Source: Thalia democratica (taxonomy: Eukaryota). From it: a stretch of DNA of 64,000 nucleotides. The translations under genes were made by a program, and so were the position numbers. The stretch covers positions 64,046,001 to 64,110,000 of the forward strand of contig OZ241827.1 of NCBI GenBank assembly GCA_965202585.1, given 5' to 3'. A model generated the notes under the pieces. The model had not been told where the DNA came from and did not search any database. It saw only the letters and a list, made by a program, of their open reading frames with translations. Shown here piece after piece: positions 488-63,688 of the stretch (the first letter of the stretch is position 1; every line of letters starts with the position of its first letter).

Positions 488-3400
488 GTTAGTTTTGTAT
501 ATAAATTGATTAAAATATTGTTCATGTGATTGTTAATATAAAGTGTCTTTGAAATAAGTACTTGACAATTAAACAAAGTTTGTATGATGAAATGTTTGTT
601 AGACTGTTGTCGAACAAATATTCATATAGCAATAATGAAAAATAAGTTTATATTTTTCCACTAAGTATAAATACCCAAATTTAGTTTACTTTTTGTTATA
701 CATATAGCAAGTTTTATAAAAAATTTACTAATAACAAATTGTTATTATTATAACTGCTGTTAATCAAGAAAATACTTTTTTTTCAGATAATTTTTTGACA
801 TGAATTTGTTATACTAAAGTTGTGTATAATTTTAATTAGTAAAACTCATTTACTTACTTAAAACTCATCACTACTAACTCATCATTACTTAAAACCCACA
901 AGAAACTAAAGTTTCCAAAGAAAGTATCTTTAAAAAAAAGAAAAAAAAAACACAGATAGAATCTAGCAAAGGTTCACTAAGTCGTTTTAAACCAGAAAAG
1001 TACCCACATATAAAGAAGTTGTCCAACACAACTTAAAAATAGATATTTCAATCAAAACTGCTTTTAAAGCTACACAAAAATTATTGTAAACAACAATCTA
1101 TACAAATTTTATTTCAACCAGAAAAGTACCCGCAAATAAAGAAGCTGTTCACGGTTGACAACCACTTTGTGTACGTCGTCCTAGCAATGGTGTGCACACA
1201 GGTCATCATGTGCTACCTGGTCAAAGACATGTCGTGGACCGCGTTGATTTTGCTGGCCTACTTGTTTGGAGGCACCATCAACCACTCTCTGACGCTGGCC
1301 ATACACGACATCAGCCACAACACTGCGTTCGGGTTGGTTGGATGTTTCATTAAATTATTTCTATTTTTTAAACATGTACATGTGCTATGTACTGTTTAGT
1401 TATTGTTTGAAATGGTTAGTTTACACCACTGAACCCCCAGGTGTTAAAATAAAGCAGTATAAACATTGCTACAAAAATTAATAGATGTTTTGTAATAAAT
1501 CAAAGGAAAATAAACTTGCTGTTTTATGTAAAGCAAAATAAACAAACTTTACTTTGATTACTTAACTTCAATTAACAACTTTATATTTGATTAATTGATT
1601 AAGTGTTTCAAAGTATAGTTGTTTAAAAGAATGAAGTTTTATATTTTTTCTACATTTTATAAGTCATAATACAGCTTCTGCTTGAGTTGAAAACTGTATT
1701 ATATTAATAAATAAGTATCAACATGTTAAAGTAATTTAACAAATTAGCTCACTTAAAAGCTGCATATTTTTTATTTTTGTTTTTTTAAGGCATATTGGTA
1801 TAAACAACACATCTACCTTTTAAGTGATTTAGATATTGTACAAAAAAATAATCAACATACAGTTGTTCAGTATATTTTATTATACGTAATATTTATAGTA
1901 ACAAGATTTTAATATTTTTTTATGTTTTTCGTTTGTAATAGTCAACTTGCAATACATGATATAAGTCAAAATGTTGCATTTGAGCAAACTATATTTTACT
2001 CTACATTTCAGTATGTTGAATGATGATACAAAAATAATTATAAACTTTATACATGACTTTTAATTTTTATTTTATAATTTGACTGCTATATGTGTGTTAG
2101 TTTATTTACAGTTGAAAACAAAATTAAATTTTTAAAACTGTTCAAATCTGCAACTGTTACATCTCTACAGAAAACAAAAAATACATTTTTAAACAGGCGC
2201 CACTAGACAAAATGATGGAAAACTTTCAAATAGTATAAACTGTCACAAATGTATAAAAATGCTTTTATACAGCTAAATACAACAATCTGCACATGACAAA
2301 GTAGAACATGTTTATTAAATTGCAAATTCTACTAAAAAAAAAACAAAGCTGCTAGGTGACAAAATAAGCAACATATTTTAACAAAACTTTTATATCCTTT
2401 AACATACAAAGTTGCCACTTTACTTGGAAACCCCAAAAAACCTGCCATTTGAAAATTTAGGCAAAAAAAATAACCTGGAGCTTTATACAATTTTTACATG
2501 TTAAGTAGGAAAGTTTTGATTAGAAAACACATTTGAAGTAGCTTTACAGTATCTTTTCAATGTTTTTATACTATCTAACACAGTTTTTCACCTTAAATTT
2601 AACTTTAAACTAAAAATAAACCCATAAACATGTACTTTCAAAAACCTGGAAGGAATTTCTCAAAAACCAGTGGCAACCCTGAACATAATATACTTGGTTA
2701 TTTTTTTAACTTCTTTTTAACACTGCTTGCAATAGTCACACTAAGTCATACATTTGGTAGCTATTGAAAATTTAAAGTGGTACATATTACATAATACTTT
2801 AAAACAGATATTTTTGGATTACAACAAAATCAGCAGTACAACTAATTTAATATTTTTTTCAAACCAAGGCACAAAACAAAAGAACACACATTTCTCATAA
2901 AGTTTCAACATTGCTAAAAAACACACACTAGGCACATGATATACTGGGGCACATAAATGCACACGTGAAATTATAGCAAATTTTAACATGTTACACACGT
3001 TCATTACTGTTTTACAGATGTTACCAACCTACAGTAAACATTATTGATTTTTATTTACCACAACTAATTTCAAGTGTTTTCAAACGCGCAGGTACCACAA
3101 GACGCTGTGGAACAGGTACTTCGGGATGATCGCCAACCTGCCCATAGGCGTCCCGATGTCCATCGGCTTCAAAAAGTACCATGTCGACCACCACAGGTTT
3201 GTGTTTAGTTTTACTTGCTAGACTTTGAAACATGCATTTATTTGAATTTGTTCACACGTCATAAGTTGAAATTTTCTTTCAAAATGTTTTACTAACCAAA
3301 AGTTTTTTCAAATTTGTTTAATATATACCACTTGATAATGAAACTCGTATAGTTTTGAAAACGTTTGTGAAATGAAATCTAAAAAAAAAAAGAGTAATTT

Positions 3401-6400
3401 CTATACACTCAGTTGCAAATAGTATATAAATTTACGTTAATTTTTTACATCTTTTGTTTTTCTCTTTGAATTACAGTTAAGACACCTACAAGGCAAATCA
3501 TTATTTGATAAAAGAATTCTTTAAATTTTTTAGTTTGTATTTTTATTCAGCGCAAAATTGGTTTTTATTAAATAATTTGTTTATTTTCAAAATAATTAGT
3601 TGTTGGGTTTTTCAAGTCTGTTCTTACATGCGTAAACCAGGAAAGTGTTTTTGAAATGTAATTTTTAAGATGACCAGTGTAGGGTTTTGTTTTGTGTTAA
3701 AGGCTAGTAGTATTCAGCAATGAAAGTAATTCTTTTTTTAAATATTTTATCATTTCCACCTATTTTAAACTTGATTTATAGTATTTTTATTCAGTCTTCC
3801 ACTTTTAAAAAAATATTCTCTCCCAACCCAGGCTAGATTTTTAACCAGAAAGAGTGGCAACCTTTAGTATTTAAGTTAAAAATATTGTTTAAAAAATGAT
3901 GTGAAATGTACGTATTAAGAATTTAAAAATACTACATGTCTTGAATTGAAAAAAAACATCCATGAAAAAATATTTTATGTAGTTAAACACAGTCAACCAA
4001 CCAAGACATGTTGTTTTAGTTTAATTGTTCGTTTCAACACAGAAATTTATGAAGTTAAGTCACTCAGAATTGTTTTATGTCCTAATTGATTTGTTTTCCC
4101 TAACTTCAATATGACTTTTTTTTTCAAACGCCTACAGTTGGTTTCTATGTAACTAGATTACAGTGTTTTGCATCGATAAGACTGCATGTTTTAAACGGTT
4201 TAAGAAAGTGATAAGCATTATGTTAAAATAAAATAGTATCTAAAATGCAATATCAAGTTGTGTAGAGTTTTTGAAATTATTTTTGGTTTTGAGGTTGTTG
4301 TTATATTTTATTATTTATGTTGTAGTCTTAAATATTAAAGTATGTTTTTATCTAATAAAAATAAGTTGATTATTTATGTGAAAAAATTGTAAATTAACCT
4401 TATTTGAAGGTGAGTTAGTTTGGAATATTGTTTTATTTAAAAAACAGAAATAAGCTTTTATTTTATTTGAAAAAAACTAATATACGAAAAGATAAGGCTA
4501 AATTATTGTTAAATGATGGTTTGTTGATGTCTGAAAGTCTGTATTTAAAATCAATTCTTTTTCAATTAAATTCAAGCCACAAGGCTCAAGTTTAAGCTTA
4601 GTAACTAAATACAAAATTTATATTTCTGTTTAACTTCTATATTTTGATTCAACTTAGAAATGTGTACAAATGTTGTTTAAAACGAAATATTATTGATTTT
4701 TTATATTAGGTGTAGTTTTACTACGCATAGGTTTATGCTGTTTTTTATAGTCTGCTAAACCAATTATAAGCACTTTTACAATATATCATTTGTAAAGCAT
4801 TTTTAGAAAGTTTATTCCAAACACTTATTTAATAAAATTATCTTGTTATGCTATAAACATTCAAGCAAAAAGTAATTCAACCAACTCAAGTGCAATCAGT
4901 TTTTTAAATAATTAAGTTCATTTATAAAAAGAAATTACAATAATTACTGTAACTTTAAATATATTATCAATTGATAAGTGTATATTTTTTCTAGGCTGCG
5001 TTGTTGATTTTTACAATGACGCTGTAGGAAGCTTCCTACACAAAATTTGCATAAATTTTGAAACTTTAAAATATCTTAACAAAAGCTTTTTTGAGTTTTA
5101 AGCAACTGTCTAAAGCTAAATTGTGCTTTCACCAACTGATAAAATTAAGAAAAATAATTTAACTGTGTTATAGTTTATGTATGTAATAAATTGTTTTTTG
5201 ATTACAACTACACTCCCGACTTAGCAAACGTTGAAATTTTTCAAACCATGTAAAAAGTTTCCAGTCGGGTTGAAATATTGAGCAAAGCAACAATATAAAA
5301 GCATTTGTAAGGCAGGAAAATTAATATTCACTGTGAATGGAAGGTGGGTAATATGCAAACAAAAGGTGCAGCTCGCGTTGCTTGGTTTTTGTTTATCTTT
5401 CAACAGAGCGTTAAAATTTTCATCTTACGTAACTTTTCATAGCCATTCGAAAAGTGATAAAAAAGTTGAAGTCTATTTTGTTTTGCAATTTTTTTTAATC
5501 ATTAAAAGTCAGAAAAACGCATTAATCATTGGCCAATGGCCACAGATATAGTTTACGATAACAAAAAAGTATGAACAACTTATACTCGATAGTTGACTTG
5601 TTTTTATAAAACTTAAAAAAAACTTGCTGTTTCTAAAAGCTGTGGATTTTGTGCATTGAAATAAAACTCACTGACTAGATTTAACTCACTTTCTTTCCCT
5701 TTTATTTTTAATCACGTGCACACTCTGCATAAAAGTTTTTCAAACAAACTTTTGTTAAGACGTTCACTGTGGAGAATTTAAATTATAGTGCAAACACATT
5801 ACATCATTTTTAAATTTAAGTTAAATGTCACTAAATAAACTTGACATTAGTAAACAGTAATTCGTAAAGTTATAGCGTGTATTTACTTTAAGTAGGTATG
5901 GATGCTGTTTTTTCTAATGGTTATATAACTTTACACTTTTGGTATCCCACAAACGAATTTGCCAAACCAAACCGCATTTATTATGAGAAATGTTGTTTTA
6001 AACAGTATTAAACAGTATTAAAAACTTGTTGTCCTGTTTACTTTTATGTGAGTCTTGTATCTTTTTACATACAGTTTTTACTTAATTGTTTAAAATCCAT
6101 AATACCTTTAATTATAAAAAGAATATGAACAAAATATGAAAAATAAGAATATAAAAAAAAAATGTGATTGAATTTCGTTAAATTTAAACTGTCGAACAAA
6201 ATTACAATGATAGACAGTTTCAGGGTTTTCGGTATATTTGAAACAGCTGCATTTTAGTTTTTTTTCAAATATATTATTTGCCATTAATATTGTTATTAAA
6301 CATTTCTAGTATGTGTTTATTTGTAAGCAAGTTACCATAAAAATGAAAAGATTCATAGAAACCTAAATGGCAAAAAGTTAAAGTTCATCAAAAAATTTGA

Positions 6401-9400
6401 ATAAAAAATAATAATGCCATGGTGGAAGCCTGTATGGTAGCAAACTGAAACTACTCAAAACATTTAAACTCAAATACCATTCAACGCAGGTACCTGGGCG
6501 GGGACAAGTTGGACGTGGACCTGCCAACGGAGCTGGAAGGTTACCTGTTCAGCAACTCGTTCACCAAAATAATCTGGCTCTTCCTCAACCCGCTCTTCTA
6601 CACGTTGCGACCCATGGCCGTCAACCCCAAGCCCGTCACTGGTTGGTGATTGGTTGACTGTAGTTTTGGTTTGTTACGAGTTTTCTCAGCTTTGGTTTTT
6701 TTTTCTGCGCATTGAAAACTGCAAGTTCAAAAGAATAAAGTTAATATTTTGTATTGTGTTACTTTTATATTTAAAAGTTCTTGGGAAAAATGTATTTTTA
6801 AAATTTTTATGTAAAGAAAAATTATTGAGATTATTGCTCAGTTTGTAATATGTGTATTCGGAATTTGTTAAAATTTTTACAAATTGTTTGTTTTCCTTGT
6901 AACGTTTTAAGATTTTTATTTACATCAGTAACGTATAGTGTTATGTATTATTTAAAACAACAACTCGGTCAAAAAAAATGAGTACGTATTTATATGAAAG
7001 CGTTGAAACTTCTCATAAATAATTGATAGTTTGTAAGTTGAGGCGGAACAACTTAAATTAAAGATTTTTGACTTTGTGGACCGATATTGTAATGTATTGA
7101 AATTTCTTTAAACCTGGAAAAAAAAGATTTGTGTAACCGAGATTAAACATTTATAAAGAATCAGCTTGGACTGTAAACAATGTTAATAACCGAAGAATTC
7201 TCCTATAAAACTGAATGGTAAACGTGATATGTTTTAATTACCGAGATTAATTAAACAAAACAAAAAACCTAAAATAGATTCAACTGTCTTTTTCATATCA
7301 ATCAGAAATTATATTAAATTGAATGAATATTTGAAGTTTGCTATTTATTTACTCTAGCCCAATTGTACACCTATTTTTATATGTTTTATCGATAACAGAC
7401 TTTTAAGTATACCTCAAAATTATTCTATCAATACATTTTGAACAAAATCAGTTATTCATTAAATAAATAAAGTTACACATTAAATTTTTCTTAAATCATA
7501 CACTTTTATAATAATTCAGTTGTTTTATAAGATTATCTTAATTTCATCCACAAGCCTTTATTAATACTTACTTACTTACTTCAAAAAGTAAAACCAAATA
7601 TGACATAAACCGATAACCAACATGCATTCAAATGTTCATACAATAAGAAACTTGTATTTAGTTTTCAACCAATCGCAGACCTGGAAATTCACAACACGAT
7701 CATCCAATTGGCGTTCGACGGCTGGTTGCTATGGAGCTGGGGACCGAAGCCAGTGTTGTACCTGTTGTCAGGCACCCTTCTTTCCCTGGGTCTGCACCCC
7801 GTATCTGGCCACTTCATATCCGAGCACTACATGTACACAAAAGTTTGTTTGTTTTTCATAAAAAATGCGATTTAGTTCGATGTTCAAGTAAAAGTGTTTC
7901 GTTACGTATGCATAAAAGTTTTGTTTTTGGTAACAAAATAGAAAATAGAATGGTTTGACACAAATAAATTTATTTTCAACAATGTTATTAAGTTGAGATG
8001 AAGATAGATAAAAGTATAGAAGTGTTTACATTACATATACACAAAGGTTTATTTGTTTTGTGTTAAAGTTGATGATATGTTGAAAGCGAAATGTTTACTT
8101 CATGTACACAAAAGATTGCTTGCCAAGACATTGATTAGTCTTTATATTTTCAATTTCCAAACACGCGCTATGGTTGTTGCTTTTCGGGAATTAGTTTTGA
8201 AAACAAACTAAACATACGAATTCTATTTTAAGCCAAGAAATAAAAGTTTAAAGATAAAAAAGTCTTAATACTACCTGTATTTAATTTTGAGTGAAATTTA
8301 AAGTACCTTTTAAAAGTGTAGTTTTTCAAACATAAGGAGCTTATTATTAGATGCATACCAGAATATTGAACTAATTTTGTGTGTATGCAAAATTGTTTTT
8401 CATCAAGCTTATTTGTAAAGCTCTAAAGTTTTACATCTTATTATTCAAATGAATTCAAAATGCGTTAGATATTTTTTCTTTAAATTAAAAAAAGTATTCC
8501 GTTTCCGAATGGAAACAGTTTACTTTTTAAGAAGTTATAAAGTTTGAGAGAAATTTTTAAACACTGTGTATTTGTTCGGTAAGTATTTTCCGTACCAAAA
8601 TAAATTTTACATAAAACATGAAAATTGATGCTGATTGATTAAAGTTGCATTTAGAAGCAAAACATTGTAGAAAACTATCTGAAAAAAAAAGAAGTTCCAA
8701 ATGTCTATAATTTATATTTGCACTAATGCAAGTATAATTTAGCTTATATTCATTTGTCTTACATAATTAAAGTACAAAACTTAACTAAGTAAGGATGACA
8801 AAAAGAAAATAATTAGGAAAAAATAAGTAAAAACACTTTTGTATATTTGCACCAGGGTCAGGAAACTTACTCGTACTACGGAGTTTTGAACAGAATAACT
8901 TTCAATGTTGGATACCACGTTGAACACCACGATTTTCCCGCAATACCCAGTTCCAAGCTACCTTACGTTAGTATTTGTACTGCGATATTTTTTATTTACT
9001 GTAGTCATTTAAATATATCATTTTTTAATCAAAATGCATACCAAGTGCTAAACTTCCATATGTTACTCGTTTGTACTTATTTTAAATATAAACTTTTAAT
9101 ATATTTACACATAAAATCATCCAGTACTGAATAAAGATTTATTTAGTATAAAACTTACGTTTTTCAATAAAGTTATGTGATAGGCTCTAAATTGCCTTAC
9201 CTTACTAACTTGTTGATAATATTAACTTAGTTACACAAACGTATTAATTATGTGAGTTTAATAACAAAGTATATAAAATATTGACACAGTTACAGTTTCT
9301 TCAGACAATCATACTAGTATTTGTTGTTTAGATGGGTCGTATTAAATTCAAATGTTGTAGTGTTTGCTATATTTATTTATAGGTTGAACATAAAACCAGT

Positions 9401-11119
9401 AATAAACTGACTAAATGTTTAAATATACACAAACACATATTAAGTAATTTTAATTTTTATGACCTAAAATTTTCATACGTTAATTCTATTATAATTCAAT
9501 TGAAATAAAAGTCAATTTTGTTACAAGGATACAGTTTTGTAAGTATTAGCCTTTGGTATGTATTTAAAATATTTAAAAAAATAATAAACACAAATCAAAT
9601 TACATACAATGTTTTTGAAATACATGATTGAAAACTGTTTATGTTCTGAATTTTCTTCAATTAGTTTCAAACTAAGAAATGTTTCATAACGAGTATTGTG
9701 GATACTTCACCTTGACAAAATTTACGCTTTACAAAGTAAAGAGTGCTGTGAGGTGCGTTCTATTGTAACAATTTGTATTGTTGAAGTTAATTTACTTTTG
9801 AAAGATTTGAATTATTCACTTTCATTGCGATAACTGTTGTGCTTTATCTCAAAATGGTGTTTTTGGTTTTGTTACTTTCAAGTTTAAAAACATACTTTTG
9901 TCGTGTTTGATCAAAACTATTTGCGAATAAGAAAAAACTGTACAAAGTAATTAAGGAAAAAAAAGTAAATAGCTAACAAATTATTATGAAGCAATTATCA
10001 AAATATCTAAACTATGAAACAACTTTCAATTTAATTGGTTTAATTTAAAAACAAGTTTAAAATTTTTAGTTGCTAAAATATACGCTAAAAATTTACAGCT
10101 TTTTTTTCTACTTTGATGAAATATTTATTAGTTGCAAAGCTTGAAAATGCGTTTTCATTTTCTCTCAGGTGATAAGTTTTTGTTATGAAATATTTAAGAA
10201 TACTTTTTACATTTGCTTTAACAACCACATGCTGGTTAAAAAAACACTAAATTAATCTTTTTTACTACACAGAAATTAGTTAAGCGTTTTATAGCGTTAT
10301 GAGCTTAAAATATAAAATTGTCTTGCGCTGAACTGCTATAAAATGACTGATCTTTTTAATTATTTTTTATGGTAACCAATTATGAAAGTTTACGTCGTAT
10401 TGTGTCTGTTTAGTTTTGTGTGATTTATCCAGTGTAAGCTCAAGTGGCTGAAAACTGCTTTGCATATAACGTACGGATCGTTTTCAGTTTCACGTTTTGA
10501 ATTAAACTTATAATGTACACTTTATATGTACTATAAACACAACACTACTTTTTTTTTCTGAAACAATTGCTTCACTATTCCGTTGAACAAAATAGGTTCT
10601 AAGTGAATTTGTTAGGTAGACAATAAAAAAATACATAAGTACTTTGAATTTTCATGAACATATGTTGTAAAAAATATTAACTACAAACTAATAAAAAATC
10701 CAAGTATTGTGATTTCTTTATACGTTTATTTTAAAGTGATTAATAATCAAATTACTAAAAATAAATAAACTATCTAGTTGAAGAAGCTAACATTAGTTTT
10801 CGCTCTTTTTGCATAACTGCCTTTTAAAAAATCAATAATTAAAAAAACCTATAAAAACTTCCAGGTAAAGAAGGTAGCGCAAGATTTGTATCGTCTTCAT
10901 ACAACAGACTTTAGATTTATATATAATAACTCAACTAATAGATAAATTAAAATGCAGGTGAAGAAGATAGCGCCGGATTTTTACGAGCACCTCCCCTCGT
11001 ACACTTCATGGTGCCGGGTCCTCTTCGATTTCGTCTTCGATCCCGCCATCGGCCCCCTCTGCCGCGTCAGAAGGAACTTCGAGCTGGGCGGTGACGCGAT
11101 AAAGGCGGTGACGTCATAA
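406..11119 (+). CDS. DEGS1: Sphingolipid delta(4)-desaturase / dihydroceramide desaturase (DES1/DES2 family), 7 coding exons, 328 aa
   Basis: Exons 406-487, 1122-1332, 3092-3196, 6490-6641, 7679-7842, 8856-8966 and 10958-11119 join in frame through GT-AG introns (987 nt including stop). N-terminus [23 protein letters not shown]; three His boxes HDISH, HVDHH and HVEHH; GHFISEH and ETYSYYG motifs typical of DEGS. DEGS1 versus DEGS2 orthology is not resolved. Confidence 0.95.
1122..1332 (+). CDS. DEGS1: DEGS exon 2 (KYPQIKKL...[13 protein letters not shown])
   Basis: Acceptor CAACCAG; first His box; donor GTTGGT at 1333. Confidence 0.93.
2407..2681. mobile_element. MITE, CAGGGTTGCCAC-TIR family, 6-bp TSD
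   Basis: Left end CAAAGTTGCCAC, right end GTGGCAACCCTG; AACATA directly flanks both ends (2401-2406, 2682-2687). Interior resembles 32760-33060 and 35493-35888. Confidence 0.8.
3092..3196 (+). CDS. DEGS1: DEGS exon 3 ([35 protein letters not shown])
   Basis: Acceptor CGCGCAG; second His box; donor GTTTGT at 3197. Confidence 0.93.
6490..6641 (+). CDS. DEGS1: DEGS exon 4 ([17 protein letters not shown]...[12 protein letters not shown])
   Basis: Acceptor AACGCAG; DVDLPT and LRP motifs; donor GTTGGT at 6642. Confidence 0.93.
7679..7842 (+). CDS. DEGS1: DEGS exon 5 (LEIHNTIIQ...[18 protein letters not shown])
   Basis: Acceptor ATCGCAG; [13 protein letters not shown] motif; donor GTTTGT at 7843. 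Confidence 0.93.
8856..8966 (+). CDS. DEGS1: DEGS exon 6 (GQETYSYYG...[19 protein letters not shown])
   Basis: Acceptor GCACCAG; third His box; donor GTTAGT at 8967. Confidence 0.93.
10958..11119 (+). CDS. DEGS1: DEGS exon 7, terminal ([18 protein letters not shown]...KAVTS*)
   Basis: Acceptor AATGCAG; IAP.FY..LP...SW motif; TAA at 11117-11119. Confidence 0.92.
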   Translation: MKKIAPDFYEHLPSYTSWCRVLFDFVFDPAIGPLCRVRRNFELGGDAIKAVTS

Positions 11120-13418
11120 CGCGTGCTGGGAATATTTTTTTTTCTTTTAAGTTTTGCGATGCTTTTCATTGTTGTAGTTGGTAGTGTAGTTAAAAGATTT
11201 AGTATTTATTATTCAAATATAAATAATTATAAAATAAACATTTTTTTAATAAAAACTGTATTGATAAAGTTTCAAATAATCCACTTTCTCAGTAAATTCT
11301 ATTTTGAGTAAGTATTAAAATTAATATTTTTCTATGATAATTTTGACTTGAAAAAGCCAAATGAGCTGAAAAAATAAACTTTTTGATAAGTTTCAAATCG
11401 AAAATAAGATACGGAAACGCCAAAGTTTTAGAAGTAATTAGATTTACGTTTGTAGACATTGATTTTGTGATTGAGCTTGTTAAAACTATTTAACGCTACT
11501 GTTAAAAAAATTTCAAACAAACTTTTTTGATGGTGAAATGTGAACAGGTTTTTTATAAACTATAAACTTTTCGTTATTAAATTTTAAGAGCTCTTCTTGC
11601 TTCTTACACTTAAAACAAAAAGTTTTTTTATTAAAACAAAAAAGCTTGTGTGAGTTCAATGTGTCATTTTATCAAATTCAATAGAACGAGCTTGACATGT
11701 TAACAAAATACCTTCTGGGCCGACCTTTTATTTTTATTTTTTTAAATTTAGGTGTGATTTAACTAACACCAACTGTAGATAGTAAGTGCTATTTAGTTAC
11801 ACAATATTTCTTCACATATATATATTATCCTTCTAAAGCGTAATTAAACCTTTGTTGGTACAAAGATTTCGTTTTTAACCATTTTAAATGTTCTAAATCT
11901 TGTTTGTTGTGTTTGAAATAACTTATTTATCCACTGTTTTTCTAACGATATTTAAACTTTTTTTGTTATGAGTTATATAAACACTTGAGCGGAAATGTTT
12001 ACAAATGTTAAAATCAATAAGCAAGGTTTACACAATTTTCAATCTAAGTTTTAAAGCATAGGGGGTTTCACAATGTGCTTGTGTTATAATCCATACAATT
12101 TCAATTTAATTGAATGGATTATATGTAACAAAAACTTTATTGAACTTGATTTTATTTTGATTTTTTGTGCTTTACGCATTTGAGATTTACTTCGCTTTTT
12201 CTTTTGTATTTAATTTTATGCAATTTTTTTTCATGAAATCATGAACGTCTAGGCCGTCTCATCAATTTTTTTATTGTTTTCGTATAATTTTTGTCGTATT
12301 GTTATTTGTATTCAGATATGCACTCAATCTCGCTTTATTGACAAAAGATGATACTAAAGTTCAAGTAATTTGAAAATAACTTCTAACCGAACAAATATGT
12401 ACTTGAAAACTACTAACTTTAGAAATAATTAAAATAAAAGTTATCAGGCATTCCAAAAAAGTTTAACCTTGTTTTTTTTTTCATTTGTACGAAATATATT
12501 TTTTGTTGAAATCTGTGGCTTAATACAACTCACGGTATATTTTAATAAAAATAAACAAGATACAGCTACATTAATAAGTAATAAACTGAGCTCATACTTC
12601 TGTCTTGATTTTGCTGGACTGTACGTCGTCTTTTTACAAATAAAATTCATTATTTGTGTCTCTTTCGTTTTTATCGAAACATATTTATTATTCAATTGTT
12701 TGTTTGTTATTTTAATTTTAAACAACAAAAATAAAGTATTAGTAATACGCCTATAGTTTTTAGAAAATCTTAGTTTTAAATTTTTAAACCGAAACTTATA
12801 AAAACTTATTTATCAAAACTTAAACTTAAGTTAAAGTTGTAGAAATTGTTATTCTAATATTCATGTTCTTCTTTAGTTTGACAAGATAATTTAAACTTTA
12901 AAAGTACTCAATCACCCATTAAAGTGTATAAAAAAAAGTTAAGTTATTTGTATTATATTTTATTTATAGGTACAATCTTATTCCTAATTAAAATATGGTT
13001 TTAAATTTAAAAGCATATTTTAGTAAAAAAATTAGCAGTAAGAAAGATAATAAAGAATAAAAAAATAATTATGTATTGTCGTTTTATTTGATATAAGCAT
13101 TCAAAACAAAAAGCTTTAAAAGAAACTCAATAACTTTATCCGAAATTATCAGAATCTAAGTAAAGCAAGTTTTTAAAATCAATTAGATAATTAGATACAA
13201 CAAAAAATTAGAATAATTAATGGTACAAGATACTACCTTAGTAAGGTGTGATATAATTAAAAAGTTTTACAAAAGAACTCTTAAAAGCAATTAAACTCGT
13301 AAATTAAAAATAAAAATAATGTACATGTCAGATTTCATACTGATTAATGAAACAAAAGACAAACAAGTTAACCATCAAAAGGTCGAGTTTGAAAACTTTG
13401 TTTGGCGTTATTGATGCA

Positions 13419-13683
13419 TTATTGATGCTGGCAAATAAAGTTGAATTTGTAGTTAGGATGATTATAAAGCCGACCAAACTCACTACCGCTACCACAATAT
13501 ACACTCATGAAATCGTACCCTGCACTTGAACTAATACTGGGTAATCCCCTTCTTCCTCCATACCACTCGTATTCGAATGAAGCAGGGACGTCGCTCCCGT
13601 CAGCGAGCCTCCACCCTCCGCTGGACTCCTTCTCCATCCCGATCCACGTCCAACCTTCTGCTCCACTTCTTCTGCACAGCTCT
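13419..13683 (-). CDS. Lectin gene exon 4, C-terminal part of the C-type lectin domain
   Basis: Acceptor CAACAG, phase 2; ELC...GWTWIGM...WRLADG...YC...FICQHQ*. Confidence 0.82.
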
Positions 13684-14974
13684 CTGTTGTTAAAAGTTAT
13701 TTAGATCGTGTTAGTTTTGTGTTTTAACAGGCATTGTTGCTTTTAAATTTGGTTGAACCATTTTGTATGTTATCAAACTGTTACAGTTTTACGAACCGTC
13801 TTTGCGCGGTGGTATCAATTCCAACTTGGGCGAGGACCATGTTGTGCTCTTTGCAGTAATCTCCGGCTTCCTTGAACGAAAATTCTTTTCCTGTTGAAAT
13901 ATTGGAAAACAGTTTGAAGTGTGCCGGCATACATAACATGTTCTGCACCTTGTTAAACTTTTTAGGATTTTTTAATATAAGTAAAAGACTTTTTACGTGC
14001 GAGTTGAACTAGTCATGCTCTAAAAGTTATAAGCCTGTCTAATAATTGTTTACCTACATTTTTTTAAAACAGCAAAAGTAAATAAAAGAAAAGTAGTAAA
14101 CAACAACTACTTTTTGCGCATTTGAGTGGATTAGTTTGGAAACTCGGAAGTATTTTTCCATCCACACAACTTCTCACTGTTTCACCTTCCGCCTCATAAT
14201 GCAGTTCGCATAGATACTTCACAACTGTATTATGACGAACGAGGCGGGTCGAGTTTGTCGTACTTGAAGCAACTTCAGGCACTTCACAACCTTTGATAAA
14301 CAATATAAATTAATCCGAAACCGTTTTATCCAATAAACCAAAAACTATATACTTTTTAACAAAAATTTTTAATTATAAAAATGCAAGTAATTTTGTTGAC
14401 AAACGATATAATTTGATTTGAAGGGCTTAACTAATTTTAAACAACAAGCCAACATATTTTCATAAGAAACTAACAATTATTTATTGAGAAAAGAAAAAAT
14501 AATCAAAAAATGCAAGTAATTTTCAACTGACTTGACAAAGCTTCAACGTGTTTGTTGAGGCGCAGAATTTCTTCGCTCTGCCGTCCCACCGCCGCGACCA
14601 ACTTTTCCACCGTCCAAAGCTTCGAGGCGCCTGTTCTGTTCGGATTCGACGTTCGAAATTTCGCCGCTCAGCTCCGACAGCGGCGCCGAGTTTCTCTTGA
14701 TTTGCCTTCCGTGTCTCGCCGTCGCCGCCGAAACTTCCGCGACGACTTCGCTCAGGTCCGTGCCCGCGGGTCCGGCGGGGCCCGCCTCCCCCTTCTCGCC
14801 CTTTGCGCCGGCCTTGCCGCGCTTGACGGCGTTGCCATGTGGAGCGGAGGGAGAAAAAGGGGGGTTTTCCCCTGGGTCGCAGGTGGTGGTCGTCACCGAA
14901 GTGCAAGTCTGGCTTTCGGCGCGAACGGCCGAGAAAAAAAGCACCGAAACAAAAACTACTGAATATTTGTTCAT
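13419..14974 (-). CDS. Secreted collectin-like protein: signal peptide, 7 Gly-X-Y triplets, coiled coil, CCP/sushi domain, C-type lectin-like domain. Frame-disrupted as assembled (possible pseudogene, or rescued by exon skipping)
   Basis: Exons 14974-14532 (donor GTCAGT), 14290-14111 (CCP, phase 1-1), 13948-13797 and 13683-13419. MNKYSVVFVSVLFFSAVRA signal peptide; GKAGAKGEKGEAGPAGPAGTD collagen; CEVP...YLC...SCVDG...KC sushi; F.EA.DYC...LA, WIG and FICQ lectin motifs. A +1 shift lies near 14614 and a probable one near 13920. Confidence 0.75.
13797..13948 (-). CDS. Lectin gene exon 3, N-terminal part of the C-type lectin domain
   Basis: HFKLFSNISTGKEFSFKEAGDYCKEHNMVLAQVGIDTTAQR; donor GTTCGT at 13796. 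The 5' boundary is uncertain (13948, 13942 or 13890). Confidence 0.72.
14111..14290 (-). CDS. Lectin gene exon 2, CCP/sushi domain
   Basis: 180-nt phase 1-1 exon with four sushi-spaced Cys (CEVP, YLC, SCVDG, LKC). Confidence 0.8.
14532..14974 (-). CDS. Lectin gene exon 1 (signal peptide, collagen, coiled coil); frameshift near 14614
   Basis: Acceptor TTTTACAG 7 nt before the ATG. The heptad pattern continues only in the +1 frame (TVEKLVAAVGRQSEEILRLNKHVEALS) up to the GTCAGT donor at 14531. Confidence 0.75.
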
Positions 14975-16519
14975 TGTGTATCTGTAAAAGTTTAACTAGT
15001 TAGCTTTAACCTGAAGTTTTATTTATTAGAAGTAGCTCGCTGCTGAACAAAACAAAAACTTTTTAAAATTAAAAAAAAAAATAGTTTATTTAAAAACAAC
15101 TATTAGTATTACTTTATTTTTATATAAACATCAAGATATACTTTAATCAAATTTTAGCTCAACATTTAAAGCCACTTTCAAAACTTTTGATTCTAAACTA
15201 ACCAAAATTTGATCATTAAAAACTGAGCTAAAATAACAACTCAAATCATGTAGCTTAAAATTATATTTAAAGACACTAGCACGAAAAGTATGCTCAACTG
15301 ATTTTTTTTTCTCAAACAGGCTTTCCACAGGAAATAAAGTACTTAAAGGAACAAGCACAAAAGTTTTTTTTTTCTTTTAACAAAACAAATAGTTTATTTT
15401 TCGTTGTAACAAAATAAACAGTTTTTTTTTGTAACAAACTAAACAGTTTTTTTTTTGTTAAGAGATTAAAACAATTTAAATGCTTTTCAGCTTAGATGTG
15501 GGTCAGGTATTTGTTTTTTGCTACAAACTTCGCAAGAAATTTACACGCTTAAGTACACTTAAAAAAAATTTTACTTCTAACAAGTGTTGCTTTTACTTTT
15601 AGGGCTTGTTTAAAGCAATTTAAAGTATATCAATGAAAAAAAATATATATATTACAAAAATTTTATCATGTAAAAATTTGAGGTGTATTAAATATTTTTT
15701 AACTACTAATAGTTATCTTATAACGTTATTTTAAAGGTTTTCAGATTAAATATATATTACTTTTGTTTAAAGCATATAGCATTTCGTAACAATTATAAGA
15801 TATCTTCTGAGATTTTTAAAAATTGTAACGCAAAATATCATCTAATTAAAAATTCATTAAAATTTTATTAATTATCGTAACTGTAAAGAAAAGATTCTTA
15901 TTTTTTTACTCATCACGAAACATTAAAACATGAGGATTACATAAACAGAGAAAATAATTTTCTTAAACTTAGCTTAAAGTTAAAGTGTTTCATTAAAGGT
16001 TAATTTTATAAAAAAACAGTTCTTTAAATATTAACTTAATGGTCTTTGAAACCTTCATAAAAAACCGGTAAAAAATTCCTTATAAATGAATAATTAAAAT
16101 GCTTATGTTTTATCTTGATTTAAAACACCTAGTAGTAAATAGGAGATCAATACATAAACCAAATTGGATTCAACTGCTATTAAAGTATAAAAAAAAATTA
16201 TATATAGTAATCAATTAATTGCTAAATAACTAAAACTCCTAATACCACAAAAAAAAAAACAGAGTCAAAACTAAAAATTATTAGATTTTCAATAAAATTT
16301 ATACTTAAACAAGGTTTTAACAAAAAATACACCTTACATTTTTCGAACTTACAACACTTTATTTGTAATAAACATTTATATTTAATTGAATTATAATATG
16401 AAATATAATACAAGCGTCCGGCAGCATGTTATTTATCCTAGTATAGAGGTTTTTCACAACTTTTTTTTTAAATTCCAAAATTATTTAACTCAAGGACACT
16501 GCAAATGAAAGGAAAATGT

Positions 16520-16680
16520 TTGTGCAATCAGAAGCAGCTTGTACGACATTCGCTTGTTCAAGGTTGGCTTCACAATAAAAGTTTCAACATTATTTACATT
16601 GCAACGTACCTTGCAAGCTTGGATTATTTTTATGATGTAACGTTTCACACTTTGGATTGTGTTGTGTGAGATGATAAAAA
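16520..16680 (-). promoter_or_regulatory. Conserved block: putative non-coding first exon / promoter of the lectin gene, with donor AAG|GTACGT at 16609
   Basis: About 5 differences in ~160 nt versus the copy at 18278-18437, while flanks are clearly more diverged. It contains a minus-strand donor that could pair with the acceptor at 14984-14982. Confidence 0.45.
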
Positions 16681-16842
16681 ATAAAAGTAACTTTGCTTTT
16701 TTATGGACATATCGTTGGTCGTTTGTGTTTTAGGTACAAAATAGTAGTTAATTTCAGTTTTTTAACATTATATAAGTTTTTAAACGGTTATTTTAAGGTT
16801 ATAACTAAAAGAAATGTCAAATTTTTAAATAAAACATTATGC

Positions 16843-16999
16843 ACTTGATGGCGTTGCCACGGGGGATTTGGGGAGAAAAGGGGGATTTTTCCCTTGGTCG
16901 TATTTCTTATACTGAAGTCTGAGTCTGGCTATTGGGGCGAACGGTCGAGAAAAAAGCACCTAAATCAAAACTACTGAATATTTGTTTGTTGTATACCTG
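16843..16999 (-). pseudogene. Decayed duplicate of the 5' part of lectin exon 1
   Basis: Homologous to 14821-14984. ATG is replaced by ACA (16989-16987), TAG falls at 16962-16960, and the copy is truncated before the collagen repeat. Confidence 0.85.
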
Positions 17000-18277
17000 T
17001 AAAAGCTGTAATTTATTGATTTTTAATCTTAATTTTTATTAATTAGAAGTAGCTTGGCGCTGAAGAAAATTAAAACTTTTAAAAACTTTAACAAATATCA
17101 AGACTTTTGTCAAAAAAAACAACTAGTAACTCTTTATTTTAGTATGAAAACTAATGTATAGACTTTAACTAAAACTAAACTCAACGTTTAAAGTTACTTG
17201 CAGAACTTTTGATTTTCAATTAAACCGACACTTAATCATCAAACACTAAATTAAAATAATAACTCGAATCCTGATATTTTTGGATGTGGCGCACATATTT
17301 GTATTTTGCTGCAAAATTCGCATGAAGTTTACACGCTTGAGAACACTTTGAAAAAATATTTTTTCAAACAAGTGTTGCTTTTACTTTTTTTGGTCAATTA
17401 AAGAAAATTAAAGGATATCGATAAAAAAAACGTTTTACAAGAATTTTATCATGCAAAAATTTGAGGTGTTTATATAAATTTATTCAACAGTTAATAGTTA
17501 TTTTATAAAAGTAACATAAAGCTTTTGAGATTAAAAATATATATTTCTTTTATTTAAAGCATATATTACTTTGTAAAAACTAAAAGATATGTACTGTTTT
17601 TTTATCAAATTGTAACGCAAGGTAATGTTTAATTTAAGACTCATTAAAATTTTATTAAACTATCTTAACTGTAAAGTAAAGATTATAAACATTTATTTTA
17701 TCTATTTATCACGAAACATTAAAACATGATGAGCACATAAACAGAGAAAATAATTTTCAAAAACTTAGCTTAAAGTTAAAGTGTTTCATTAAAGGTTAGT
17801 TTTATAAAAAACAGTTTTTATAATATTAACTTAATGGGCAAGTCTTTGAAACTTTCACATAAAACTGATAAAGCTATCGTTATAAATAAAATACTTAAAA
17901 TGCTTATATTTTATCTTTCTCTAAAACACCTAGTAGTAACTAGGAAATCTAGACATAAACCAAATTGAATTTAACTGCTCTTAAAAAAAAGAACTTTTTA
18001 CACATATTTATTAATAAATCGCAAAACAACTAAAAATCCTAACAGTTCAGAAAAAAACAGTAGGAAAAATGAAAAATATTAGGTTTTTAACAAAATATTT
18101 CAACTAAATTAGGTTTTACTAAAAAAATAAACTTGAGAACTCAATTTATAACAACTCGCAACAGCTTTTCTTGTAATGAACAATACATGTTGTTTAAGTT
18201 AGTATAAAAGTTTTAAAACTTTTTTTTTTTAATTTCAAAGTTCTCTAGTTCAAAGGCGTGGCAAATTAACGATCAAT

Positions 18278-18437
18278 TTTGCGCAATCAGAAGCAGCTTG
18301 TACGACATTCGCTTGTTCAAGGTTGGTTTCAAATAAAAGTTTCAACATTATTTACATTGCAACGTACCTTGCAAGCTTGGATTGTTTTTATGATGTAACG
18401 TTTCACACTTTGTATTGTGTTGTGTGAGATGATAAAA
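18278..18437 (-). promoter_or_regulatory. Second copy of the conserved putative first-exon/promoter block (donor GTACGT at 18367)
   Basis: Near-identical to 16520-16680. Confidence 0.4.
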
Positions 18438-21400
18438 ACTATAAGTAATTTTTCTTTATGATGGGAATATCAGTTATTTTTTCTGTTTGTGACACAATAT
18501 ATTTTTTAATTTGAGTTTTTCAAACGATGTACAAATTTTTTCAATTTCAATTGGAGGTTATAGTTAAAGTTAATATTTAAATAAATAAAAAATATTTCTT
18601 TAAACTTTTGTAATGCTGAATAAAAGTTTAGTGCTTGTTCGAAAACGACTTTAAACCTATTAAGTCAAAAGTTTCCAAGTTTTTGTTATTAAAAAAAAAA
18701 AGTCATTATAAAGATTATTCTTTATAATCTTTTTGTTTGCTTATCATCTTCTATACAACTCCTTTGAAGCCAACACTATTTTACAAAAGATAATTAAAAT
18801 AAATTGCTTATATAATATATTTCTGCGAATTACTACTAGTAAGCTGAGAATCTATACATAAACTAATCTGGGTTCAACTACCTTAAAAAAATTACAAATA
18901 GCGATTAATTAATTTTTTTACTCTGCGTTTGGTGCAAAAAAAAACAGCTTCAAACTGATTTTTTAGTTTTACAATTTAACTTTTTAACTAAATCAGGTTT
19001 GTACAGAAAAATAAAACTGACATTTAAAGTACCGACAATTTTTTTTCTTATAAACAATTCATGTTATTTTAACTAATAAAAAAGCTTATAGCAAGAACTT
19101 TTGCTCTTAACTGAATTTTCAAATTTTACAAGCACAATTAAATGTTAAAAAGCTTTAAAGTAAACATGCTTTTATGTGTAATAAAGTAAACATTTTCGTT
19201 GCGCGTGTAATTTTTAGGTTTAAATTCTTAATTAGTATGTGGAAATTTAATTCAACTTTTGTATTTTAACCTACTTTACTAACCTAAGTGTATTTAATTA
19301 AAAAAATCATTAATAAGTTTTATATTATTTCATAGCAAAATTTAAATTTAGAAAAATTAAAATAAATTTAAATAATAGAAAAAACTGTGAGGTACATAAG
19401 TGAGATATTTTTGTTAGAATACAAGTAAATGACTAGATAACGACTTTTATTGATACAAGTTTATGAATTAGATTTATTATATTTTAAGTTAGATTTTTTG
19501 TAAAGATTGTCTATTTATTTCTAAGAGAAGTAATTCCAGGTAAAAATATTTCAGAGTATAGTTATTAAACTATGAAGTATAATTGATTTCATTACAGAGT
19601 TTTAAAAACAGCTGTAAAGGGGCTAGTAAAGTTAAACATGCAAAACTCCAAGTTTTCAAACTTTTTTAATTATCATACTTAAAATTTTCGTCATAAACAA
19701 TTAATTAATACTTTTTAATCAAGCTCAGTTTTAAATGCAAACACAAACTTTTTTTTTAAGGTTTTAATAATACTATAGTTACAATAAACTTAGTTTGAAC
19801 CTTTTTTACAAATCAGAATGCAAAAGAAAATTAGCAAAACAAAACTAAAACTTGTTCTACATTTGTTGTGAGTCTGCAAGTTGAAACAACATTTCTTTCA
19901 CACAACAATCGGTACAAAACATATTTCACATTTATAGTTTACAGCAGTACTCAACTCACTACTCTATAAAAATAGGTTGAAAGCAGAAGTTATTCATTTT
20001 ACAAAGTACAAACCATTACACGTTAAGAAACAGCAAAATAATTTGAAATCATAACTTACAAAGCTAGTTATAAGTTGCCGTTATTATCCAATTTTATTAA
20101 TAACTTTAAAAAAGCTAAAAACTTTTTTCGAAGCGATAGAAGGTGTGGTTAAATTAAGTTAGGACGCTAAGCTTTTATTAATCAAAAACTGTTGGTATAT
20201 TTGCAAATCTAAAAAGTCTTTCACTATCTCATAGTATCTTTAACTATCTATCTTGGTATCTCTTAGTATATATAGTTTATTGAGCGACAAAAAAGCGCGA
20301 AAATATTTCGTCCTACGACTTGGTGCACAAAGAACCTTTCGGTTATCGAGTCGCACACCATGGATACCTTTTAACGTCTTGTCTTAGTATGTCTTATTAT
20401 ATTTTAGTATTTCTTTTAATACACAAAATTTGCCACAAATAAACCGTTGAACAGCGGTGTGGTTTTATTAAAATTTAAAATTAGTGAAAGCTTCTGAAAT
20501 CTTACAAACATAATATAGCTGAAAAACATGTATTAAACAAAACTTGGTTACTAAATCAAAATTCATCACTCTAAATCGCAAGAAACTATGCGCATTCGTG
20601 CTTTTATATTTTAGTTATTAAAAACTTATTTTTTGATAAATGTTTAATATGTTTGGTTGATGTGGGTTAGAGATAAAGCTAAATTTCGTTTTATTGTTGA
20701 GTCAGCAAATATTAGGGAAACACGTTCAAATTACAATCTGACCCCTTCGATAAAAGTCCATAAGTGTGTATTTAAAAAATGCCTAATCATAATAAACTGT
20801 ATTTCTTTTCCTTGAAATAAAATCAATCAATAATTTAACAACTTGTTACTGAATAAAATTTACCACGTTTTTATAATTTAAGACTTTGAATGAAAGATTG
20901 TATGCAATATTTTTAAGTTTTTATTTAAATTTTATTTTTATTTAAAACACTTATAATAAACCTGTTGTATCTTGATTAATTTAAATATTTTAATAAAATT
21001 TTTAAATAATGTTAAAAGAAACAACTTTGTAACATATTTCTAGCATTGAATCTGCTTAAAAGTTTACCAAAACTAACGAAAATAAAAAAGATTTTAATAA
21101 AGTATAATAGGTAAGACAATTACTTATAACATTTCTATTTAATTTTTGAAAGAACAAAACACTCATTTTTAATGTCATTTAATCGATTATTCGTCATACA
21201 AATAATAAAAAATTAATATTTAGTTTGAATAGTTGGCCGTTATTATGCCATTCAAATAGATATAAATACAAAAATTTCTTATTCGTAAAACAAAAATACG
21301 AGTTATAGACTGAATTTATGTACTTATATAGCTTATTTGTACTAGTTTACTAGATATATATAAATATCTACTTTAAGTATTCAAATAAAGATTTTAAAGA

Positions 21401-23121
21401 TGGCAATGAATTGTTGTGAAAACGACATTTTTTAGTTACCAAAAATCGATATTGTTATAAATTAAAAGACATTATATTTTTACATGAATTTTTGTAAAAA
21501 AAATTTTTTTTTCAAAAATAAAAACAAGTTTTAGAATAATACTAAAATTCAAGGTTTTGTTTAGATGTAATTGTGTATGACCACTAGTTGGAGTTTAAAT
21601 TTGCTCTGGTGCATGCAGCAAGGGACTAAAGTTTAAATCTGAAAATTTGAAACACTGTGTAGTAAACTAAAAATATGAACTTGAAAATTATGTATTTCGT
21701 AAAGACCCTAGAAACCAAAATAAACAATTTAAGTATTAATGCAGTGACTTGACTTTCTAGGACATTTGTTATTATTTCCTCTGACAGTTATATTATGTTT
21801 TTAATACTACTTACTTGATTTTGAGTTGAAAAATATTCAATGTATTTAGTGTAAAATGCATCTTTATTACATGTTTATATCATATTAAGAATCTTTTCTA
21901 ATTCTATTTGAATAAGATTTATTTAATCACTGACAAGGTCTTTGACCAAAACTTAGTTTGTAAAATAAATTCTTGAAAGTAGTTGAGATCTCTCTATTTG
22001 TTTTCTTAAAACCAAAACATACAATACTGATAATCTTTTTAACTTTGGTAGCATTTGATTTTTTATTTTTCCTAATTTTTAAGTTATAAGGGTTCATAAT
22101 TGAAGAGTTCAACAGGTCCATATGGAGTTATTAAAAATTTGTGAAGTAAGACTATAATTAATCTTACAACTATTTTAAATCATTATCAAACCCCTCAGAT
22201 AAATATCAAGTGAATAATCAAGTGTTTTATATCCTAACAATATAGGTTTTTATGTCTTAAGTTTTTATAATTATTAAAAATTATGTAAGTTTAGGCTTAT
22301 ATTTAAAGCTAACTATTTAATTATTTATTATAGTATTAATAATTATATAATACAAAAAACACTCCCTAAAACTTTTAAATTAGTTTTTTAAAAATTGAAA
22401 AGATAATAGCAATAAAAACTTCATTTTCATATGGGTTTCTTTGATTACTAAACAAATTTAATCTCAAATTAAATGTTTTATATTTTATTAAAAATATTTT
22501 TCAATTTATGACTTCAGCTATAAAATGAATTGAGGGCAAAAGTTATTTTTTGTAAAAAAATCTTTGACAACTTTTGACCTCAAGACTTAAAAAGTATATA
22601 AATCTCTACAAAAATATAGAAATGTAAATAAAAACAAGATTGATTGTATGTTCTCATTAAGTTGTTCCAGTAATTTATTTTAATATTACTTAATAAAATT
22701 ATAAGATTCATGTCTGATTTTTATCAAGTTTTTCAGTAATTTTAATTTTCTAGTAATTAGTAGTTTAACAGAAATTTATGTATTATTTATTTATTTTTTA
22801 ATAATTTTTTTCTCATACTTTTACTGTTTATTCTTAATGGAAAAAAATATATATAGGCAAAAGTTTTTATTATTCAAAAAAAAAGTTTGTAAGAAGATTA
22901 TATTTCTGGAAATTTTACACCAACTTTTTTAATTATTAATTTTGCATGCCATATCTTTTCAAGGAATAAGTTGTAAATCACTTTTTTCAGTATTATTTTT
23001 CATACAAATAACTAAGCTACTAGTAGGCTCCCTATGAAAAGCACAAACTATAAAACACAAAAGTCTATTTAACCAAAATCTTCTTTTTGTACAATATAAG
23101 AAAAACAAACTGTCAATTTTA

Positions 23122-24093: not shown

Positions 24094-24762
24094 GGGCCTA
24101 GGAGAGGTAAATCTTTTTTTTCACAATTCAATTTTATTTTATAGATTTAACTAAGCTACAAGATGCTTTTTACAGAATTAAAAATTTAAAATAATTTTTG
24201 AGATATAGCAGGTCAAAATTGGAGGCAAAAATAGGTTCCTTAGGGAGGTACAAACTAAAATTGCAAAAAAAAACTATTTCACTATAAATCTATCATCTCC
24301 TACGTTTTTTGAGATAAATATCTCAAACTTTCAGGAAATGTTCCTTGCAATATTTGAAATGTTCTGTAAGATAAGATAAAAAAAATTAGAAAATAAAATT
24401 ATCATAAAAAAATAAACAAAAAAAAATTTATTTTGTTTTTTTGTCATAAATTTATCTTTTTTTTATTAAAAAAAATTTTTTTTTGACAGAATCTTTTAAA
24501 TATTGCAAGGAACATTTCCTGAAAATTTGAGGCAGTTTTCTAAAAAAATGTAGAAGATAGATTTTTAGTGAAATAGTCTTTTTTTTTGCCCTTTTAGTTT
24601 GTACCTCCCTAAGGAACCTATTGTTGCCTCCAATTTTGACCTGCTATATCTCAAAAGTTAATTTTTAAATTTTAATTCTGTAACAAAAAGGTTAGTTAAA
24701 ACAAAATAAAACAAGACTATATTGTTATAAAGGTTGTTTGACCCCTCAACCCTCCTATGCTC
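24094..24762. mobile_element. Foldback MITE, TTAA-flanked, Kolobok-like
   Basis: Long inverted arms: 24200-24260 GAGATATAGCAGGTCAAAATTGGAGG...CAAACTAAAA is the near-perfect reverse complement of 24593-24652. Left TTAA|GGGCCTAGG; right end CCTCCTATGCTC. Confidence 0.8.
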
Positions 24763-26849: not shown

Positions 26850-27054
26850 TACTAGCTGTAGGAGAAGGTAGATTTTTGAGGAAATAGATGTTTTTGCTTT
26901 TATGATTTGCCTTCATTCCATAAACCATAAGAACCTATTGAGCCCTCCAAATTTTTACCATCGTATCTCAAAAACTAATTTGAATTTAAAAAAATTGCTA
27001 GCTATATTTTTGAAACAAGACCAACATGTAAAAAAGTGTCTAACCCCTATAGCC
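26850..27054. mobile_element. Right arm remnant of the Kolobok-like foldback family
   Basis: GTAGGAGAAGGTAGATTTTT...GAACCTATTG...TATCTCAAAA...CCCCTATAGCC|TTAA. Confidence 0.6.

Positions 27055-30477: not shown

Positions 30478-63688
<33,211 letters not shown>

Follow-up and report, generated by a model that had tools for sequence, protein, structure and literature searches.

The closest described counterpart of the locus analyzed here is the 37-bp variable number tandem repeat (VNTR) in intron 7 of human F7, in which the authentic donor is followed by identical, potentially functional but silent pseudo-donors and the most upstream site is used (Borensztajn et al., 2006, PMC1557585). Splice signals and intron DNA are also multiplied in other ways: introns can be created by tandem or segmental duplication of a segment that contains a splice site (Rogers model; Hellsten et al., 2011, PMC3265369; potato RdRp, PMC4974935), and introners and transposon-derived intron sequences add intron DNA genome-wide (Gozashti et al., 2022, PMC9860276). 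The present analysis concerns a 64,000-nt stretch of the genome of the salp Thalia democratica (contig OZ241827.1, positions 64,046,001–64,110,000; hereafter the window), in which a sphingolipid delta-4 desaturase-like gene (DEGS), a PABP gene with four RRMs and a collectin-like lectin gene carry partial copies of their own splice junctions, termed echoes, in the adjacent introns. Exon 7 (E7) of PABP is followed by an array with the same layout as the F7 VNTR, and contigs assembled from RNA use only its first donor. Whereas the human array is a handful of repeats in one gene, that of PABP has 220 units (13 kb) and an acceptor-side counterpart, and similar copies are found at 13 of the 32 splice junctions of the three neighboring genes. 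The silence of the pseudo-donors is documented here by RNA contigs rather than by mutagenesis. Two long-standing questions are what makes introns grow and how one splice site is selected from several look-alikes; the single human case has served as an argument that the first of several identical donors wins, and here the arrangement recurs on a 220-fold scale, on the acceptor side as well, and, less strikingly, at about 40% of the junctions that were analyzed.

Gene models were assembled from GC-rich islands, which are sharply bounded in a window of 26% GC overall, together with reading frames and splice motifs. Exons have 50–57% GC, with a GC content at third codon positions (GC3) of 0.75–0.86, and introns have about 24% GC. 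The 13 junctions (DEGS, four; PABP, eight; lectin, one), which comprise eight donors and five acceptors, each have at least one same-strand self-copy in the adjacent intron, offset by 75–500 nt from its source (Table 1). An echo contains 9–40 nt of the facing exon edge (mostly about 23–30 nt), usually the splice dinucleotide, and 0–25 recognizable nucleotides of intron; its exon-side breakpoint lies no more than 40 nt inside an exon of 105–211 nt, and it resembles only the edge of its own neighboring exon. The phenomenon is real and statistically robust, and constitutes a much larger-scale variant of the F7-type layout. The reading that we prefer, to which a probability of roughly 0.55 is assigned, is that splice-junction segments are duplicated locally, on the same strand and at the DNA level, more commonly at exon–intron borders than elsewhere in introns, through a bias that is most likely mutational in origin.

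An earlier reading of this DNA (the original prediction) had reported echoes at no fewer than four of the seven DEGS exons (E2, E5, E6, and E7) and at six of seven PABP exons (E1, E2, E3, E5, E6, and E7), all on the correct side of the exon, and had seen none at the exon that begins at 44594 (PABP E4). Alignment probes recovered the same exons, with the copies on the same strand and in the adjacent intron, and E4 lacked an echo on checking as well. The 17-nt lectin match that had been listed (14378–14394 vs. 14508–14524) is real, and the proposed age series holds, in that decayed single echoes, ladders of tandem copies and two arrays were all recovered; the arrays, put at about 98 and 220 units, were counted as 11.3 + 86.9 units (Tandem Repeats Finder) and 220 junction copies. 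The statement that every echo straddles or abuts a junction is true of most echoes, including the 58-bp unit upstream of PABP E3, which only abuts the junction and holds no exon sequence, but not of the PABP E6 acceptor echo, which matches exon positions +5 to +25 only and whose adjoining acceptor is not recognizable. Echoes and arrays had also been expected to enlarge introns, and within the window they account for about 64% of the intronic sequence of PABP.

Table 1. Splice-junction echoes, arrays and gene models, in coordinates of the window.
Feature	Position	Strand	Source and details
DEGS E2 acceptor echo	986–1025	+	source 1112–1151 (-10 to +29), offset -126, 35/40 identical, CAG kept, p = 2e-9
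DEGS E5 donor echoes	8029–8059; 8097–8122; 7903–7939	+	source 7825–7855; 27/31; 23/26, GT lost; weak; p = 1.7e-4
DEGS E6 donor echo	9038–9077	+	source 8943–8981 (-23 to +15), offset +95, 30/40 identical, p = 0.0017
DEGS E7 acceptor echo	10862–10890	+	source 10955–10983 (-3 to +25), offset -93, 24/29 identical, p = 4e-4
Lectin exon-1 donor echo	14377–14403	-	source ~14506–14540, offset ~130, p = 3e-5
PABP E1 donor ladder	30886–31355	+	unit start 28 nt inside exon (30718)
PABP E2 acceptor echoes	34106–34126; 34200–34219	+	source 34324–34349, CAG kept in both, p = 3e-5
PABP E3 acceptor, 58-bp array	36441–42944	+	~98 units
PABP E3 donor ladder	43199–43612	+	unit start 40 nt inside exon (43071)
PABP E5 donor echo, weak	45808–45834	+	source 45312–45338, offset +496, 22/27 identical, p ~ 0.002, 33 bits
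PABP E6 acceptor echo	46378–46398	+	source 46481–46501 (exon +5 to +25), 20/21 identical, p = 3e-7
PABP E6 donor echo	46737–46766	+	source 46608–46637 (-23 to +6), offset +129, 25/30 identical, p = 2e-5
PABP E7 donor, 59/62-bp array	47787–61190	+	live exon end + 220 copies
DEGS gene (sphingolipid delta-4 desaturase-like)	406–11119	+	7 exons: 406–487, 1122–1332, 3092–3196, 6490–6641, 7679–7842, 8856–8966, 10958–11119
PABP gene (four RRMs)	30560–63257	+	8 exons: ~30560–30745, 34333–34526, 42945–43110, 44594–44700, 45201–45336, 46477–46631, 47610–47810, 63180–63257

The enrichment at junctions was evaluated by local alignment of 70-nt junction probes to the adjacent intron. Among the 26 DEGS and PABP probes, 12 score above every null sample; when the nulls were Gumbel-fitted and the targets were 700 nt long, 10 are significant at p < 1e-3 and 12 at p < 0.01. 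Reverse-strand probes gave 0/26, and neither these nor the window-wide repeat scan revealed any opposite-strand or inverted junction copy. One of six lectin junctions has an echo, consisting of an 18-nt core and, across a gap, 8–9 nt from the end of the exon; its donor has been lost by deletion. Probe-sides placed within introns gave matches in 15 of 382 cases, 11 of them inside junction-derived ladders and four in transposon subterminal repeats; with the ladder sides removed, the comparison is 4/371 for intronic sides vs. 10/26 for junctions (Fisher p = 2e-10). An information-weighted scan of all direct repeats 30–700 nt apart over the whole window, with a cut-off of 26 bits, yielded at or above that value only the junction echoes, their ladders, transposon-internal repeats, and one 13-nt exon-internal match. 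Chance is excluded as the source of the junction echoes.

A different objection is that duplication is uniform along the DNA and that junction copies only look enriched, either because a GC-rich, conserved exon keeps them recognizable or through a selection filter. Old echoes are indeed recognizable mainly in their GC-rich, exon-derived part, and the side and strand of the copies are trivial given tandem duplication and the need for an intact mRNA. Detectability was therefore simulated. Tandem units confined to introns, with sizes and ages as observed, were detected with a power of 0.67–1.0 up to 20% per-copy divergence. Since decay of whole units is unsupported for the old echoes by a test of residual similarity (see below), the power analysis was redone for short patches of 16–40 nt, which were detected with a power of 0.40 when intron-only and 0.86 when they covered a junction, about a twofold advantage for the latter. 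The expectations corrected in this way miss the data by orders of magnitude: under a uniform duplication rate the observed split has a probability of about 1.5e-9 in the unit model and 7e-7 in the patch model. Exon interiors, which are like the edges in composition and constraint and equally detectable, have no echoes (P ~ 0.003), and neither does any of 10 GC-rich islands outside exons (p = 0.018). Young intron-only tandem units of 60–300 nt are absent from about 17–19 kb of intron and about 19 kb of intergenic DNA, compared with four young units anchored at junctions. Ascertainment, which the original prediction had named as its own caveat, does not account for the junction pattern in the window, where duplications at junctions and at other intronic positions remained unequal in frequency once detectability was controlled, and a uniform process is quite improbable.

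The form of the youngest copies bears on how duplication proceeds. At PABP E1 and E3, young copies are complete tandem units with homologous intron parts, the E1 unit spanning exon position -28 to intron position +140 and the E3 unit exon position -40 to intron position +185. The E1 ladder contains two copies of the full 168–172-nt unit (period 172, 91%, Tandem Repeats Finder), an older pair of ~238-nt units (31058 and ~31295), and a partial copy at 31162–31193. The E3 donor ladder has a period of 225–280 nt, with copies at 43296–43358 (GTGAGT intact) and 43571–43612 (GT changed to GC), a partial copy at 43199–43218, and homologous intron parts at 43232–43272 and 43512–43552. These nested generations would fit unequal exchange involving a source and an echo already present. 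In the process that we envisage, a segment made up of 9–40 nt of exon edge, the splice site and intron of varying length would typically be duplicated, far more often at borders between GC-rich exon and AT-rich intron than elsewhere in introns, and the extra copy would be placed inside the intron. The copy would always be intronic because only that arrangement keeps the mRNA intact, and it would be removed with the intron because the spliceosome takes the first donor or the last acceptor of the real exon. It would then decay neutrally under AT-biased mutation, while unequal exchange or slippage between the two copies could build ladders and, in two cases, minisatellites. Differences between echo and exon fall at codon position 3 in 59% of cases, mostly with G or C in the exon and A or T in the echo; the share expected under AT-biased mutation, with one third of the divergence due to synonymous change in the exon, is about 0.60. 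Coding-like constraint on the echoes was thus rejected, the third-position excess being explained by GC3-rich exons and AT-biased decay.

The PABP E7 array begins with the live junction: its first unit, which starts at 47787, consists of the last 24 nt of the exon and the authentic donor, and this first element crosses the exon–intron boundary, as in boundary-spanning arrays of the F7 intron-7 (IVS7) type. The human array is said to have 5–8 repeats. About five of the 220 copies that follow the live unit, decayed and more widely spaced, form a distal tail (60891–61190). GT is kept in 219 of 221 junction copies (GTGAGT in 138, GTTAGT in 65, GTTGGT in 8, GTGAAT in 5, and GTTTGT in 3), and all of the common hexamers serve as real donors elsewhere in the window; the 24-nt exon part is identical to the exon in 86 copies and has one mismatch in 99. 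AATAAA is present in every 59-bp unit, and translation read through from E7 into the array would stop after nine codons. The unit junction reads TTCAGT/GTGAGT, in which CAG is one base off the register of a recursive splice site (YAG/GTRAGT); at the level of contigs a single direct join is seen. No clear age gradient or higher-order period was found along the array, in which 59- and 62-nt variants are intermixed. On inspection for microhomology, the distal array edges proved to be decayed units.

Such an array could be regulatory, as part of a wider set of selected decoys in which intronic U1/U2 sites help exon definition or suppress premature polyadenylation. The conservation of GT and the AATAAA in the units would fit this, as would the retention of GT or AG in most echoes, and enrichment at junctions would be expected from selection for copies of splice signals. 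Selection on the array donors was rejected, because variability is low and even across columns and the donor columns are no more conserved than the others. Moreover, the first array units show no extra coverage or ends in the RNA contigs, the decay of the echoes is that of neutral DNA, GT has been lost from the donor echoes at 8097, 31319, and 43612, and acceptor echoes, which offer no obvious benefit, are about as common as donor echoes. Selected decoys are an unlikely explanation.

Spliced RNA contigs from two metatranscriptome runs join 47810 straight to 63180, i.e., they use the most upstream donor of the array, and only authentic sites are used across both arrays and all ladders. The E3–E4, E4–E5, E5–E6, and E6–E7 joins of PABP are reproduced exactly, and contig overhangs match the end of E2 and the start of E8, in agreement with the modeled E2–E3 and E7–E8 joins. 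In a second DNA sample, whose introns are 2–6% diverged, single contigs include the E3, E5, and E6 echoes, so the echoes predate the split of the two samples. The E3 donor echo of that sample has a C at 43310, like the exon, and changes at donor positions -1 and +4 (43333 and 43337), indicating that decoys diverge independently in the two lineages. For relatives, a protein search with PABP E7 gave no candidates and a metagenome scan only an unrelated 53% match.

The same material bears on the possibility that the copies were produced in assembly, for example by the stitching of haplotypes at conserved exon edges. Heterozygosity is high in tunicate genomes, and arrays pose difficulties for assembly. 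However, contigs from a different sample hold a junction, its echo and the next echo together on one piece, array k-mer depth in that sample (as summed contig depth) is tens of times the single-copy depth, and the copies differ by AT-biased decay, unlike alleles. The single-piece echoes and the elevated array depth rule out an artefact, which is left with a negligible probability.

The acceptor-side counterpart is a 58-bp array that ends at the PABP E3 acceptor, and its two blocks are one array, split at 37096–37893 by a 0.8-kb transposon. Each unit duplicates the region around the branch point of that acceptor and contains a branch-point-like CACTAAC and a C-rich tract. AG stands at the junction position only in the last unit; the others read CAC, stopping one base short of AG, and in the second sample the last unit (at 42941) departs from the consensus only by its final G. 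The array adjoins the exon without including it, and the idea that its unit hides exon sequence was rejected, as its alignment to the exon start scores below the shuffled mean. The inserted element is DNA-transposon-like, with 12-nt terminal inverted repeats (CAGGGTTGCCAC / GTGGCAACCCTG) and a 6-bp target duplication, TAAAGA. A sibling element with the same 12-nt terminal inverted repeat, around which no clear target duplication was seen, occupies 34563–36388 and fills most of the remaining intron 2; both elements carry subterminal CTCAGGGAA repeats. Because the array was once continuous and the sibling fills most of the rest, the ancestral intron 2 would have been roughly 150 nt long.

The cause that we favor for the junction bias would be errors of replication or repair at the abrupt GC/AT step. 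For example, forks might stall soon after entering the GC-rich exon and re-prime in the intron behind, which would fit breakpoints a few tens of nucleotides inside the exon at donors and acceptors alike. Since donors and acceptors are both affected and the copies hold unspliced junctions, a DNA-level hot spot at this step is favored; the original prediction had offered as causes slippage or repair at the GC/AT step and coupling to splicing or R-loops, either of which may be at work. Several points weigh against junction duplication by a mutational, DNA-level process. At six of the old single echoes, the rest of the putative tandem unit is no more similar than shuffled sequence (z ~ 0). Exon-side breakpoints within 40 nt could also reflect selection against long pseudo-exon fragments. 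Non-splice exon edges gave 0/5 echoes within 700 nt, which are too few to separate the GC/AT step from the splice site as the trigger. The RNA evidence consists of assembled contigs, in which rare decoy use would be hidden, and the scope is three genes in one window, with PABP additionally covered in one second sample.

Repair of adjacent single-strand breaks generates tandem duplications, and end joining generates templated insertions in both orientations. The echoes resemble the products of such repair in being local duplications of tens to hundreds of nucleotides, sometimes with filler, and differ in being direct only; neither route is known to prefer exon–intron borders. The residual-similarity result would be expected if break repair within the intron, of a polymerase-theta-like type, copied 16–40 nt of the nearby exon edge, so that single echoes were never whole units. 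The six old echoes end sharply and are flanked by unrelated sequence, the E6 acceptor echo is nearly identical to its source although the adjoining acceptor is unrecognizable, and sizes of 16–40 nt with offsets of 90–220 nt are in the appropriate range. Repair of this type usually gives both orientations, whereas the reverse-strand probes gave none; every source is found no more than 40 nt from the exon edge facing the copy, as tandem contiguity predicts; all young cases are full tandem units; and decay with indels could mask an identity of 65–75% in the AT-rich flanks. Templated patches are an unlikely explanation. The old single echoes themselves could be short-patch copies, units truncated by indels, or units whose AT-rich parts have decayed beyond recognition, and truncation was possibly favored where it disabled a harmful decoy acceptor.

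Coupling to transcription or splicing would place the trigger at the splice site itself: R-loops, or a stalled polymerase or spliceosome, would break the DNA there, or protected pre-mRNA fragments would be copied back. The copied segments are unspliced junctions of about 30–40 nt, centered slightly on the exon side at both types of site, and the result for non-splice exon edges points in the same direction, although it is not significant. Young units extend as far as 185 nt into the intron, which exceeds any footprint by a wide margin, and two duplications occur at exon ends that are not splice sites, namely one of 2 kb with a breakpoint in lectin exon 1 and one of 17 nt at the stop codon of DEGS. 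Coupling of this kind is improbable, and the GC/AT step is retained as the favored hot spot for junction duplication.

Compared with the models of intron gain introduced above, the echoes share the local duplication that doubles a splice signal and the removal of the extra material by splicing. They differ in that two copies there form the ends of a new intron, whereas here pre-existing introns are lengthened. Intron gain by duplication of an AGGT segment was considered and set aside, since the best matches of donor probes lie 75–500 nt from the donor and not at the far end of the intron. Like introners, the process might add intron DNA on a genomic scale; each echo copies the gene's own adjacent exon edge and not a dispersed family with terminal repeats, and the real transposons in the window are distinct from the echoes, so a transposon-derived origin was also rejected. 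The pattern goes unmentioned in the Salpa genome paper, and no report of a junction-wide duplication bias was found in the literature.

The bias in junction copies is locus-wide and may be genome-wide, and the interpretation given in the original prediction is, as a whole, partly supported. A mutational bias would make exon–intron borders duplication hot spots and open a new way for introns to expand, whereas a selective one would mean that intronic decoy sites are functional. More tentatively, and at somewhat less than even odds, salp genomes may hold a junction-targeted duplication process, tied to GC/AT contrast or to co-transcriptional splicing, that continually seeds decoys, is one of the main drivers of intron growth and sometimes expands without restraint into arrays with hundreds of units. 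Were this true, salps would offer a natural experiment in which spliceosomes pass over perfect decoys by the hundreds.

The DEGS model has a spliced open reading frame (ORF) that is unbroken across 328 amino acids, and its exon 6 matches Pfam FA_desaturase. The 17-nt tandem duplication at its end (11087–11119; 1.9 copies, 87%) terminates at the stop codon and has reshaped the C-terminus. In PABP, six exons (E1, E2, E3, E5, E6, and E7) match Pfam RRM_1. Over 30484–30745, the first coding exon seen has no in-frame ATG upstream of the start of RRM1, and an out-of-frame ATG at 30497 begins a short ORF; translation may truly start in an exon farther upstream or depend on trans-splicing. Just upstream of the E7 acceptor, positions 47409–47592 are GGGTGGATTT-rich; in the second DNA sample the depth of this stretch is zero, and read placement passed over it as repetitive.

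The lectin gene, which is on the - strand, has a disrupted reading frame. Within its exon 1 (14532–14974) the frame shifts where the collagen/neck part (...EALDGGK) gives way to a coiled-coil-like continuation (KLVAAVGRQSEEILRLNKHVEALSSQLK); either the gene is a pseudogene with a frameshift, or the sequence contains an error. A tandem segmental duplication of about 1.9–2.0 kb (14906–16762 vs. 16922–18520; 76–83% identity) has its left boundary inside this exon, such that the first 69 nt of coding sequence and the region upstream of it are repeated about 2 kb upstream of the gene; it is a partial copy of an exon edge at a non-splice edge. Palindromic elements resembling miniature inverted-repeat transposable elements lie at 24170–24683 (intergenic), 44227–44390 (PABP intron 3), and 45405–45738 (PABP intron 5), and the k-mer depth of the latter two in the second sample is about 100 times that of single-copy DNA.

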